A stretch of DNA of 62,801 nt, filler included, from Octopus bimaculoides (Eukaryota), in NCBI RefSeq assembly GCF_001194135.2. It is 3 parts of 3 records of this genome, joined end to end, with 100 filler letters (N's around TTAATTAATTAA, not from the genome) between each part and the next. Parts side by side here need not be neighbours in the genome. Positions count along the whole stretch, not along the records: positions 30,619 to 60,362 come from NC_068985.1; 2 more parts are not named here. One strand, given 5' to 3'. Both the position numbers and the translations under genes were made by a program. Of the stretch, positions 30,619 through 51,478 are shown one piece after another (within the stretch, counting starts at the first letter, position 1; each line of letters starts with the position of its first letter). Under the pieces are notes generated by a model. The model was not told the origin of the DNA. It did no database searches and saw nothing but the letters and a program-made list of their open reading frames with translations.

Positions 30619-30988
30619 GACTGTGGCCATGCTGGAGCACCGCCTTTAGTCGAGCAAATCGACCCCAGGACTTATTCTTTGGAAGCCTAGTACTTATTCT
30701 ATCGGTATCTTTTGCCGAACCGCTAGGTTACGGGGACATAAACACACCAGCATCGGTTGTCAAGCGATGTTAGGGGGACAAACACAGACATAGAAACACA
30801 TACACACATACATATATATATACATATATACGGCTGGCTTCTTTCAGTTTCCGTCTACCAAATCCACTCACAAGGCATTGGTCGGCCCGAGGCTATAGTA
30901 GAAGACACTTGCCCAAGATGCCACGCAGCTGGACTGAACCCGGGACCATGTGGTTGGTAAGCAAGCTACTTACCACACAACCACTCCT
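30619..30988 (-). mobile_element. SINE family B, near full length
   Basis: High similarity to 33281-33676 in reverse. Confidence 0.9.
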
Positions 30989-31527
30989 AGGGTCCGCCAT
31001 AAGTAACTATATATTTTCTTTTGCTTGTAAGTTTGTTGATACTTATTCAATTTTTCTATTTCATAAGTCATTTGAAAGCTGAAATCTTATATTTTTATTT
31101 TTATTTCTTCCCCCCACCCCACCTATTTCAGATATACTATTATATCGATTGTATCTACCCGATTAACAAAAGAGCAAAAAATTGCGGTTTTGAAATGGTT
31201 CTGCATAAAGTTATCTGGCTATGCTACAGAAACTGCTTTTGCCGTTGTTACAACAGCAGGATGGAGCAGAGGGTCTGTACTTTCAGCAGGACGGGGCACC
31301 GGCCCATTATGCTACGCTTGTGCGAAACTGGCTGGACGCCAACCTACCCTGTCGATGGATTGGCAGAAGAAGACTGCTTGAGTGGCCGTCTCGTTCGCCG
31401 GATTTGACCCCACCCGACTTTTTCCTGTGGAGTGTTCTCAAAGAGAAAGTCTACTCAACAAAGCCCCGCAACATTGCTGAACTTAAGGAACAAATTCGAG
31501 CTGCCAGATAACTTTGTGCAGAACCAT

Positions 31528-33280: not shown

Positions 33281-33676
33281 AGACGCAGGAGTGGCTGTGT
33301 GGTAAGTAACTTGCTTACCAACCACATGGCTCCTGGTTGAGTCCCATTGCGTGACACCTTGGGCAAGTGTCTTCTACTTTAGCCTCGAGCCGACCAAAGC
33401 CTTGTGAGTGGATTTAGTAGACGGAAACTGGAAGAAGCCCGTCGTATATATGTATGTGTGTGTGTTCGTGTGTTTGTGTTTGTCTCCCACCAACATCGCT
33501 TGACAACAGATGCTGGTGTATTTATGTCCCCGTAACTTAGCGGTTCGGCAAAAGAGACCGATAGAATAAGTACTAGGCTTACAAACAATAAGTCCTGGGG
33601 TCGATTTCTTCGACTAAAGGCGGTGCTCCAGCATGGCCGCAGTCAAATGACTGAAACAAGTAAAAAAGTAAAAAAG
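33281..33676 (+). mobile_element. SINE family B, full-length reference copy
   Basis: tRNA-like head (gtggctgtgtggt...ggttgagtccc), CORE-like ccttgggcaag, internal (TG)n, tail ggcggtgctccagcatggccgcagtcaaatgactgaaacaag(taaaaaag)n. Confidence 0.9.
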
Positions 33677-33709
33677 TATGCATGTATGTATGTATGTATG
33701 TATGCATGC

Positions 33710-48399: not shown

Positions 48400-48519
48400 T
48401 GAATGTGTATGTGTGCAGTTCCAAGTGTGTGTGTGTGTGCGCTACGAAGGGCGTAATATGCGATGTTTCATGATCTGGCAGCCATAGATGTATGTATGCC
48501 TTTGAATAGGAGTTTGCGC

Positions 48520-48554
<35 letters not shown>

Positions 48555-49015
48555 CGAGTTTTAAGTGTGTGTGTGTGTGTGTGGCTTTAAGTATGTGTGT
48601 GCGCTTGTGTGTATATGAGTGCTCCTAAGTGTGTTCTTGTTTGCGTGGGCTGTCTTTGTATGTGTGTGTGTATATGTGTGTATGTGTGTGTGCATATACG
48701 AGTTTTTTAGTGTGTGTGTGTATTTGTGTGCGTGTTTCTGTGTGTGTGTGCATATACGAGTTTTAAGTGTGTGTATGTGCGTATGGTTTTAAGTATGTTT
48801 GCGTGTGAATGCTCCTAAGTGTGTTCTTGCTTACGTGGGCTGTCTTCGTGTGTTTACATATACGAGCTTTTAAGTGTGTGTGGTTTTAAGTATGTGTGTG
48901 TGTTTGCGTGTGTGTGTGTGTGCATACGAGTTATAAGTGTATGTATGTGTGTGTGTGTGTTTGTTTGTATGTGAGTGTTCCTAAGGGTTTTCTTGTTTGT
49001 GTGGGCTGTCTTTGT

Positions 49016-49049
<34 letters not shown>

Positions 49050-49350
49050 CTGTGTGTGCGCGCACATATACGAGTTTTTAAGTGTGTGTGGTTTTAAGTA
49101 TGTGTTTGTGTGTGTGTGTGTGTGTATACAAGTTTTAAGTGTGTGTATGTGTTTTTAAGTATGTGTGTGTGTGTGAGTGCTCCTAAGTGTGTTCTTGTTT
49201 GCGTTGCTGTCTTTGTGTGTGTGTGTGTGTAGTTTTATGTATGTGTGTGTGTGTGAGTGCGTGTGTGGTTTGAAGTATGTGTGTGTGTGTGTGTGAGTGT
49301 GTGTATATGAGTGCTCCTAAGTGTGTTCTTGTTTGCGTGGGCTGTCTGTG
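48400..49350. repeat. Higher-order minisatellite built from fixed motifs separated by variable (TG)n
   Basis: gctcctaagtgtgttcttgtttgcgtgggctgtctt at 48621, 48811, 48977, 49179 and 49313, with interleaved tacgagttttaag and ggttttaagta. Confidence 0.85.
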
Positions 49351-50384
49351 ACTTCTGGATTTGTTTGCCATTGATGTTTGTATGTTTGTGTGGTCCCCGA
49401 GTGAGTGTATATATATGTGTATATATGTGTATAATGTTTGATGAGCGTACATATATTTCTATGCATGCATGCATATACGTACGTAGGTATGGATGTATGT
49501 GTGCACGAATGTATGCATTTGTATGTGTGTATACATGTACTATGTTTCTGTATATTTATTCATGTGTATGTGCATGTATTTGCAATTATGTATGCATGTA
49601 TGCATGTGCGTATGTGTGTCTGTATGTATGCATGCATGTATGTGTGTATGTATGTGCGTATATATTTATATATGTTTACAAAGGTGTGTCTGAATCCCTT
49701 CGGCAAACTGATCTGACCGATATTGATGTGTGTATATATCTATGTGAGTGTGCGAGTGCATATATGAGCATACTTCGGTTCTATATAAGTGAGTGTGCGT
49801 GCGTGTGTGTGTGTACGTGTGTATGTGTGTGAGAGTGTGCGTGTGAATGTACATGTATGTGTGTGTATGTATGTGTCTGAGCGTATGTGCCTGTAACTAT
49901 TCCTGCGGCTAGTTCACTTCGCACACATCAACCTATCTACGTACTTGTGTGGGTGTTTTTATTTTACACATGTGTGTGTGTGTATGTGTGTATGTGTGTG
50001 TGTCCGTATGTGAGTGTATTTGCGTGTATGTGTTTGTTTGTGTACCGCTGCGGTTTCTTGATTTGACAACTATTATTTATATATCATAAATGTATGTTTG
50101 TGAGGGTGTATGTTTAGGTATATGAATATATATGTGTGTATATATGTTTGTGTGTGGGAATGTGTGTACATATGTGTGTATATGTGCGTGTATGTGTGTG
50201 TGTGTGCTATTTGGACAGCAACGATGTGTTGTTATTTTTTAGTGTGTATACATGCTTATTTAAACACACACACACACACACACACACGCATATATATATA
50301 TGTATGCCTGTATATGTGTGTGTATCTTTGCATGTTTAGAGTTAAGACTTAAAGTGAAGATGTTGAGAAAACTACGTGTAATGG

Positions 50385-50416: not shown

Positions 50417-50637
50417 TACTCATTTACTCTTTTACTTGTTTCAGTCATTTGACTGTGGCCATGCTGGAGCACCGCCTTTACTCGAGCAAATCGACCCCAG
50501 GACTTATTCTTTGTAAGCCTAGTAATTATTCTATTGGTCTCTCTTTTGCCGAACCGCTAAGTGACGGAGACATAAGCATACCACCATCGGTTGTCAAGCA
50601 ATGCTAGGGGGACAAACACAGACACACAAACACAGAC

Positions 50638-50681
<44 letters not shown>

Positions 50682-50756
50682 ACACCCACACACACATATA
50701 TATACATATACACGACGGGCTTCTTTCAGTTTCCGTCTACCAAATCCACTCACAAG
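50412..50756 (-). mobile_element. SINE B (head lost in gap)
   Basis: High similarity to 33281-33676. Confidence 0.9.
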
Positions 50757-51097
50757 NNNNNNNNNNNNNNNNNNNNNNNNNNNNNNNNNNNNNNNNNNNN
50801 NNNNNNNNNNNNNNNNNNNNNNNNNNNNNNNNNNNNNNNNNNNNNNNNNNNNNNNNNNNNNNNNNNNNNNNNNNNNNNNNNNNNNNNNNNNNNNNNNNNN
50901 NNNNNNNNNNNNNNNNNNNNNNNNNNNNNNNNNNNNNNNNNNNNNNNNNNNNNNNNNNNNNNNNNNNNNNNNNNNNNNNNNNNNNNNNNNNNNNNNNNNN
51001 NNNNNNNNNNTGACTGTACGTACATGTGCATGACGATTAGTTTTAGTTTTTCACTTAAAATCCCTTTATAATCGTAATTTTCACCATCTGAAAAATA

Positions 51098-51478
51098 TTT
51101 CATTTTCATTTTCATTTTATCTTGTTTCAGCTCATGAGCTGTGGCCATGCTGGACGCACCACCATTTGGTGTTGCTACACAATTTTACTTCACGAATTTT
51201 ACTTCAGGAATTGACATTTGGTGCATGAGAGAGTTTGATGCAGCTGCCCTCATCTGCACCTCCTGCCGTGAAGTTGGTTCATCTGGGACACTTGACAGGA
51301 AGAGGTCCAGCCTCGTCTTGAAGACACCTACATCCACCCCATGCAAGTCTTTCAGGTCCTTCGGGATGATATTGAAGAGCTGTGGACCTCTGAACCCCAG
51401 GCTATTGCAGTATCTTGTCCTACATCTTGATGGCAAGTTTGGAGTCCTTGGCGCTATGCAATGGCGTCCAGTTTTTTT
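51098..51478 (-). mobile_element. CR1-clade LINE 3' end
   Basis: TGRHCIAP...NSLGFRGPQLFNIIPKDLKDLHGVDVGVFKTRLDLFLSSVPDEP...RAAASNSLMHQ..., stop 51185-51187, short 3' UTR and (ATGAAA)n tail. Confidence 0.85.

Follow-up and report, generated by a model that had tools for sequence, protein, structure and literature searches.

The most probable reading of the sequences described here, to which we assign a probability of about 80%, is that an octopod LINE with APE and RT domains and a CR1-like organisation shares its 3' module with a Pol III-type SINE, and that the SINE is copied in trans. The analysis concerns a window of 62,801 nucleotides of Octopus bimaculoides DNA (by the window we mean the whole stretch analysed) and, within it, the piece at positions 30,619 to 60,362 (NC_068985.1), which carries one truncated copy of the LINE and five copies of the SINE, here called SINE B. 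The module consists of two adjacent hairpins followed by a short A-rich tandem repeat.

The LINE and SINE copies in the window

The coordinates of the LINE insertion and of the SINE B copies are collected in Table 1. The LINE copy in the window (414 bp) is a dead, 5'-truncated copy of a sister subfamily. Its ORF2 remnant, in a frame open from about position 51512 to the TAA stop, encodes the peptide …TGRHCIAPR…YCNSLGFRGPQLFNIIP…FKTRLDLFLSSVPDEPTSRQE…SNSLMHQ…, which is 63–65% identical to the proteins P0001 and P0002 found by protein search, and no Pfam family matches the ORF2 C-terminal region. A tblastn search with the C-terminal part of the Argonauta ORF2 as query yielded one region only, at 51514–51215 (62% identity, E = 3e-37), the match spanning amino acids 366–465 of the 482 in the query. 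The perfect 8-bp direct repeat ATATTTTT surrounding positions 51099–51512 indicates that everything from the ORF2 remnant to the terminal repeat, spacer and tail included, arrived in a single 5'-truncated retrotransposition event, and the LINE borders of 51098–51478 given in a first-pass annotation of this DNA are corrected here to 51099–51512. The same annotation had located the tail about 20 nt past the CR1 stop codon, in good agreement with the 21 nt that separate it from the TAA on the minus strand; this spacer differs in both length and sequence among the LINE copies. The minus strand from 51163 to 51099 reads GGTGGTGCGTCCAGCATGGCC - A - CAGCTCATGAGCTG (CAGCT-CATG-AGCTG) - AAACAAGATAAA(ATGAAA)n, and the 3' terminus is without poly(A).

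Table 1. Positions of the LINE insertion, its parts and the SINE B copies, counted along the window.
Feature	Position	Strand	Basis or details
CR1-like LINE insertion, 5'-truncated	51099..51512	-	Borders from target-site duplication; tblastn; holds the C-terminal end of ORF2, the 3' UTR, both hairpins of the tail and the short repeat at the terminus
Last ~108 codons of ORF2	51185..51512	-	TAA stop at 51187-51185
3' UTR spacer, 21 nt, stop codon to tail	51164..51184	-	
Hairpin 1, GGTGGTGC-GTCCA-GCATGGCC	51143..51163	-	RNAalifold, single-sequence folds, pair counts
Hairpin 2, CAGCT-CATG-AGCTG, 5-bp stem	51128..51141	-	Pair counts and folds
AAAC linker and terminal short tandem repeat AAGATAAA(ATGAAA)n	51099..51127	-	
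Target-site duplication ATATTTTT (minus-strand reading), LINE 5' side	51513..51520	.	
Target-site duplication ATATTTTT (minus-strand reading), LINE 3' side	51091..51098	.	
SINE B, full copy	33288..33677	+	Covariance-model score 67.6 bits; tail with hairpin 1 at 33619-33638, hairpin 2 at 33640-33653 and (AAAAAGT)n end; body with A-/B-box-like head, central CCTTGGGCAAGT motif and internal (TG)n run
SINE B	30619..30987	-	3' end cut inside hairpin 2 by piece edge
SINE B	50426..50756	-	Tail 50442-50476; 68.1 bits; 5' part lost in N gap 50757-51010
SINE B	54854..55199	-	Tail 54869-54903; 63.7 bits; 5' part lost in N gap starting 55200
SINE B-family copy, older, divergent	59475..59900	-	Decayed tail; 43.8 bits

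SINE B is the commonest short repeat in the piece. Judged by its box-like and central motifs, it is probably a Pol III-type SINE with a CORE-like centre: an A-box-like TGGCTGTGTGG (1 mismatch) and a B-box-like GTTCAGTCC are spaced by about 40 nt, and the central ACCTTGGGCAAGT is a candidate CORE domain by its motif. The CORE domain is a conserved stretch of about 25 nt that includes CCTTGGG. This motif of the domain has been described previously (PMC5786205). Neither ARAGORN nor an Rfam scan at E ≤ 1 reported a tRNA in the piece. Dozens of Rfam matches to mir-297, mir-466 and mir-3149, and others to snoRNAs, were below the gathering score and located on TG/TA microsatellites, and were rejected as low-complexity artefacts. 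At the 3' end of the full copy, positions 33619–33677 (plus strand) read GGCGGTGCTCCAGCATGGCC - G - CAGTCAAATGACTG (CAGTC-AAAT-GACTG) - AAACAAGTAAAAAAGTAAAAAAGT, and in the divergent copy at 59475..59900 hairpin 2 has become TAATC/AACTG, with 3 of 5 pairs kept.

A (TG)n/(TA)n microsatellite also lies inside every SINE B copy, past the central domain and ahead of the 3' region (33440–33490, 30790–30830, 50600–50700, 55040–55110 and 59640–59760). Its length differs greatly among the copies, the shortest being about 40 nt and the longest over 100 nt. Many TG/TA microsatellites of the piece thus appear to have been seeded by SINE B.

The tail of the window LINE is approximately 79% identical to the 3' end of the five SINE copies, and the differences are not evenly spread. 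Between the LINE and the SINE tail at 33619, 7 of 14 hairpin positions differ compared with 4 of about 35 flanking positions (p = 0.007 by Fisher's exact test), as expected from the earlier observation of nearly identical flanks with differences clustered in the hairpin. The compensated stem reported together with that observation is also borne out: the stems are CAGCT/AGCTG in the LINE and CAGTC/GACTG in the SINE, with pairs 4 and 5 being C-G and U-A in the window LINE and U-A and C-G in the SINE, so that two pairs are swapped and both sides have changed in each. The core 12-mer TCCAGCATGGCC (allowing at most 1 mismatch) occurs 6 times in the window compared with 0.06 expected, always at the 3' end of an element (SINEs at 30619, 33619, 50457, 54884 and 59499, LINE at 51143).

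Comparisons beyond the window gave a similar picture. The SINE tail is 64–83% identical to ten LINE tails over about 58 nt. A covariance model of the two-hairpin tail gave each of the 19 full-length LINE and SINE tails a score of 40–68 bits and reached 40 bits nowhere but at LINE and SINE 3' ends, compared with at most 27 bits in 85 control contigs, each of which contains the 17-nt core of hairpin 1. In a pattern scan of a metagenome collection, the 17-mer GGTGCNCCAGCATGRCC was found in 120 contigs, 0 of which had the hairpin-2 and AAAC context. These 120 contigs look like chance 17-mer matches and were rejected as relatives, and the 85 control contigs were drawn from among them.

The tail in related LINE copies

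A tail of this kind next to an ORF2 remnant could be a fragment of a SINE that inserted independently beside the LINE. The window copy alone is insufficient to argue against such an origin, and SINE B is common enough to occur five times within 29.7 kb. The position of the tail in other copies of the LINE is therefore of particular relevance. Protein searches, started from the C-terminal remnant and continued with alignments of the initial matches, identified relatives in Octopus vulgaris (P0005, P0007), Argonauta hians (P0121), the NCBI assembly GCA_024449705.1, Logan assemblies of sequencing runs and ENA metagenome contigs, several of the ten tails being from read or metagenome assemblies. 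A search of the JGI metagenomes with the protein alignment produced no confirmed relative of the LINE. DNA of thirteen relatives was obtained, of which L133 (distant), L009 (which repeats L008) and L007 were set aside; with the window copy included, this left eleven informative copies. L007 was rejected as tail evidence because its sequence is cut or chimeric right after a ...DEPT motif, before the end of the ORF.

The tail directly follows ORF2 in 10 of the 11 informative copies (L001, L002, L003, L004, L005, L006, L010, L131, L132 and the window copy), with a spacer between the ORF2 stop and the tail that varies from roughly 5 to 80 nt. The other, L008, has at most a decayed tail and is an old copy, as is L009. 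Two of the tail-bearing copies are from Octopus vulgaris. The copy from Argonauta hians, L131, has a near-complete ORF2 (8308–11278, with two frame breaks) in which Exo_endo_phos_2 (PF14529, E = 3.8e-12) and RVT_1 (PF00078, E = 4.8e-32) domains were detected, and it ends in the shared tail. The first-pass annotation had proposed that full-length CR1 copies would end in this tail, with a different 3' UTR in other copies as the opposite outcome; the former is what we find, in 10 of 11 copies including the near-complete one, and in the window the target-site duplication encloses ORF2 and tail together.

These data leave little room for an independently inserted SINE fragment. The tail occupies the same position after ORF2 in ten LINE copies from at least three assemblies, the LINE tails are consistently unlike every SINE tail (CAGCY compared with CAGTC), there is no SINE body sequence upstream of the window LINE tail, and the 8-bp target-site duplication marks ORF2 and tail as a single insertion. 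We consider an origin from a SINE fragment extremely improbable and treat the tail as native to the LINE.

L133 is a more distant element, with 50% identity and a complete ORF2 containing EN and RT, and it terminates in a different tail, (GATTCAGTAA)n. The unrelated tail of L133 implies that the shared tail marks this particular LINE lineage. The 'CR1' label that we use for the lineage is putative and is based on architecture, the CR1-like features being an ORF2 with EN and RT (L131), a 3' hairpin with a short repeat of approximately octamer length, and the absence of poly(A). The C-terminal pattern LDYCSQLWSP…LxLYSLERRRERY…ILEG…FN.LP…FK..LD is one that we take to resemble elements of the CR1/L2 group.

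Three further observations were made in the course of this survey. L133 itself (3463–7296 of the 4.5-Mb ENA contig ctg11558_31x_l) is an apparently intact CR1-like element with a (GATTCAGTAA)n-type tail, an ORF1 of 262 aa, an EN part of 557 aa and an RT part of 431 aa, and may serve as an outgroup for tail evolution. In the Argonauta hians locus, positions 5207–7540 of L131, directly upstream of the LINE, contain a different retroelement with long ORFs that are RT-like by eye (motif …FVDDLKLY…) and a last ORF that looks cysteine-rich. The protein P0011 (94 aa, from a 563-nt contig) carries …LRLYSLERRRERYAVIYVWKILEGLVPNFGI…YCNSLGFKGPQLFN… and is clearly part of the ORF2 of this octopod LINE, although NCBI and UniRef list it as 'hypothetical protein, partial [Escherichia coli]'; it probably reflects eukaryotic contamination of a bacterial assembly.

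Structure and covariation of the tail

Structural analysis was performed on 18 aligned tails, 10 from LINE and 8 from SINE copies, with the long loop of L002 trimmed for the alignment. RNAalifold predicted two adjacent hairpins, and four single-sequence folds gave the identical two. Hairpin 1 has the form GGY.GGUGC-(N)NCCA-GCAU.GRCC, and hairpin 2 lies immediately downstream with one linker base between them. The single stem-loop described in the first-pass annotation corresponds to hairpin 2, which is confirmed, whereas the upstream hairpin 1 had been missed. A different second helix, pairing GTGG with CCAC across the base of hairpin 2, was considered and dropped in favour of the RNAalifold hairpin 1, since the latter is compatible with hairpin 2 and shows covariation at column 3/19.

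Standard pairs occupy 95.8% of cells over the 18 tails, compared with 22–46% when the pairing partners are slid by 1–3 columns. Changes on both sides were found in 6 of 12 pairs compared with 2.3 ± 1.0 in shuffled alignments (0 of 500 reach six), and the covariation score is 0.276 compared with 0.174, although such counts overstate the number of independent events, as the tails are related by descent and the SINE copies share one ancestral stem change. We estimate the independent compensatory events at about 3–5, which amounts to modest support that is consistent across both hairpins. The stem noted in the first-pass annotation covaries across the 18 tails.

The two hairpins differ in what is conserved. 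At pair 4 of hairpin 2, 8 tails have C-G, 8 have U-A and 1 has U·G, and at pair 5 the corresponding counts are 13, 2 and 2. Of the cells of this hairpin, 94% remain paired, around a loop of 3–10 nt with no conserved sequence. In hairpin 1, 10 tails have C-G at column 3/19, 3 have U·G and 3 have U-A. All 18 tails share one G·U pair in this hairpin, and its loop and the majority of its stem bases hardly vary. The G·U pairing, both the invariant pair and the U·G intermediates, points to sense-strand RNA rather than DNA as the form in which the structure is maintained. The earlier suggestion that structure rather than sequence is under selection therefore agrees with hairpin 2 and fails for hairpin 1, which is conserved in sequence across the 18 tails. 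From this conservation in 18 sequences, the data suggest that hairpin 1 may be read by sequence and hairpin 2 by shape.

The probable LINE partner of the SINE

Hairpin 2 and the terminal repeat vary among the LINE copies in ways that bear on the identity of the partner. The LINE stems of hairpin 2 are CAGCC/GGCTG (five copies), CAGCCC/GGGCTG, CAGCT/AGCTG (the window copy), CAGTT/GGCTG, CAGAT/AGCTG and CAGCC/GGGTG. The terminal repeat is (ATGAAA)n in the window LINE, (AAAAGAGT)n in the SINE and AAAAGAAT or AAAACATT in other LINE copies, and that of the copy L132, (AGTAAAAG)n, is exactly the SINE's unit. As the stem and the terminal repeat of the window copy are both unlike those of the SINE, the window copy is not the driver, and the partnership has to be placed at the level of the LINE lineage. 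The proposed pairing of the CR1 element with SINE B in the first-pass annotation is retained in this modified form: the tail is shared and native and its stem covaries, while the partner would be the lineage and not the copy in the window. The SINE stem CAGTC/GACTG occurs in none of the ten sampled LINE tails, and the best identity to the SINE tail is 83%, which places the donor or driver subfamily outside those sampled. LINE and SINE are both present in the window and in the Octopus vulgaris locus L004, and a joint expansion of SINEs and LINEs has been described in O. vulgaris (PMC13282606).

The same absence of the SINE stem, together with the 83% maximum in identity, would also be expected if the tail were common by descent while the SINE was moved by a LINE of another family or clade, in which case the hairpin-2 differences would represent drift; octopus genomes are also rich in RTE, Dong-R4 and L1-Tx1 elements. 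However, drift does not readily account for pairing in 94% of hairpin-2 cells despite a loop that varies in both length (3–10 nt) and sequence, nor for the presence of U·G intermediates. Moreover, L132 has the terminal repeat of the SINE, and the unrelated tail of the more distant CR1-like element makes the shared tail diagnostic of this lineage. We find mobilisation by another LINE unlikely and favour the CR1-like lineage as the partner.

The direction in which the tail was transferred is a separate question. The LINE lineage could have taken the tail from a pre-existing SINE by template switching, a process discussed for SINE and LINE RNAs in PMC4824008, and the alignment by itself does not reveal the direction. 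Against this order of events, the tail is found in LINE copies with just 45–75% identity in protein from two octopod genera. In the 21 kb examined from Argonauta, no SINE B copy was detected. The presence of the tail in such diverged LINEs and the absence of SINE B from those 21 kb fit with the tail being old in the LINE, and we judge a transfer from SINE to LINE still less probable than mobilisation by another LINE. The functional partnership between the LINE lineage and the SINE would stand whichever the direction of transfer.

Proposed mechanism and significance

These results lead us to propose the following scheme. The RNA of the LINE ends in a 3' module of about 45 nt, consisting of hairpin 1 (GGYGGUGC-NCCA-GCAUGRCC), a linker base, hairpin 2 (CAGYY-loop-RRCUG, in which pairing alone is conserved), AAAC and an A-rich tandem repeat with a unit of 6–8 nt, and the SINE has this module at its own 3' end. 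By analogy with UnaL2 and ZfL2, the ORF2 protein of the LINE lineage may bind the two-hairpin module and, at a nicked target, use the A-rich terminal repeat to prime reverse transcription; any RNA with the module, the SINE's Pol III transcript among them, could then be copied in trans. We infer both the ORF2 binding and the trans-mobilisation of the SINE from that analogy. In stringent-type LINEs, the ORF2 protein recognises the cognate 3' stem-loop through the segment lying between EN and RT, and retrotransposition depends on this binding (PMC4176376, PMC1636434).

It is tempting to go further and speculate that an octopod-restricted CR1-like lineage drives the SINE expansion, about a tenth of octopus genomes, via a bipartite tail whose hairpin 1 is recognised by sequence and hairpin 2 by shape. 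We offer this extended version tentatively, with rather less than even confidence. If true, the bipartite recognition logic would differ from the loop-specific recognition of a single stem-loop in UnaL2 and ZfL2.

SINEs represent 11.6% of the O. vulgaris genome (PMC13282606) and about 40% of the TE content in Octopus (PMC8967140), where they are the largest repeat class, and their expansion has been repeatedly discussed in relation to cephalopod genome evolution. A partner pinned to a CR1-like lineage with a 45-nt tail provides a handle for dating and explaining the SINE burst, the covariance model can be used to annotate the 3' ends of both the SINE and the LINE, and the tail can guide the design of retrotransposition assays. 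Nothing is added conceptually to the 'common tail' model of LINEs and SINEs; the value lies in cephalopod repeat annotation and in accounting for the octopus SINE burst.

Relation to known LINE–SINE pairs

In amniotes, the CR1 3' UTR consists of a hairpin and an 8-nt microsatellite. A tortoise Pol III/SINE–CR1 pair is said to have been reported by Ohshima and coworkers in 1996, with a hairpin and an octamer-type repeat but no poly(A) borrowed by the SINEs. The amniote and tortoise CR1 tail sequences are presumably unrelated to the octopus tail. The octopus repeat units also differ from the amniote octamer, being A-rich (AAAAGAGT, AAAAGAAT, AAAACATT and ATGAAA).

The closest likeness by description is found in bivalves. 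Two reports (Nishihara 2016, PMC4824008; Matetovici 2016, PMC4758252) describe the SINEs BivaV-SINE2, BivaCORE-SINE1 and Vhc_1 as sharing tails with CR1-14_CGi and CR1-1_CGi, and report conserved stem-loops with compensatory SINE–LINE mutations in these tails. The parallel is that the hosts are molluscs, that some of the SINEs have a CORE domain and that their tails correspond to the tail of a CR1 LINE; the octopus pair differs in its cephalopod host and in a LINE lineage that appears to be octopod-restricted. The mechanism is thus already known, both as the common-tail model and from mollusc CR1 examples with compensatory stem mutations, and the octopus pair is an added instance.

In the L2 clade, the eel pair UnaL2/UnaSINE1 and the zebrafish elements ZfL2-1 and ZfL2-2 are stringent-type LINEs in which the ORF2 protein recognises a 3' stem-loop that precedes a short tandem repeat (PMC1636434, PMC4176376), and UnaSINE1 resembles the octopus SINE in bearing the tail of its LINE. 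UnaL2 and ZfL2 have one stem-loop whose loop is read specifically, whereas the octopus tail has two hairpins, of which hairpin 2 has a free loop and hairpin 1 contains the conserved sequence. The octopus side of this comparison is known from sequence alone.

Among octopus SINEs, OK, OR1 and OR2 were described earlier (Ohshima & Okada 1994), and OR1 and OR2 appear as CORE-SINEs in PMC4824008 and PMC4758252; the dominant octopus SINEs are classed as tRNA-Core or tRNA-Deu in repeat annotations (PMC8967140, PMC13282606). SINE B resembles OK, OR1, OR2 and the tRNA-Core and tRNA-Deu SINEs in being an abundant octopus SINE and in its CORE-like motif CCTTGGGCAAGT, again a likeness by description. The octopus genome literature examined (including PMC13282606 and PMC8967140) gives SINE and CR1 abundances and names no partner LINE. 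A full-text literature search for the tail sequence returned no match; Repbase and Dfam were outside its scope, and the pair may be catalogued there.

Other features of the piece

Two fragments of mariner/Tc1-type elements were found on the plus strand. The one at 31209–31508 retains a C-terminal DDE_3 region (FQQDGAPAH…SPDLTPPDFFLW) with an E-value of 1.6e-4, below the Pfam cut-off, and the one at 54090–54650 an N-terminal Mos1-type HTH_48 (E = 1.1e-5). Positions 48449–49400 are occupied by GT-rich imperfect tandem repeats with units of about 85–360 nt (families D7, D10, D17, D18 and D20), a block with the look of a minisatellite array and apparently unrelated to the SINE or the LINE.
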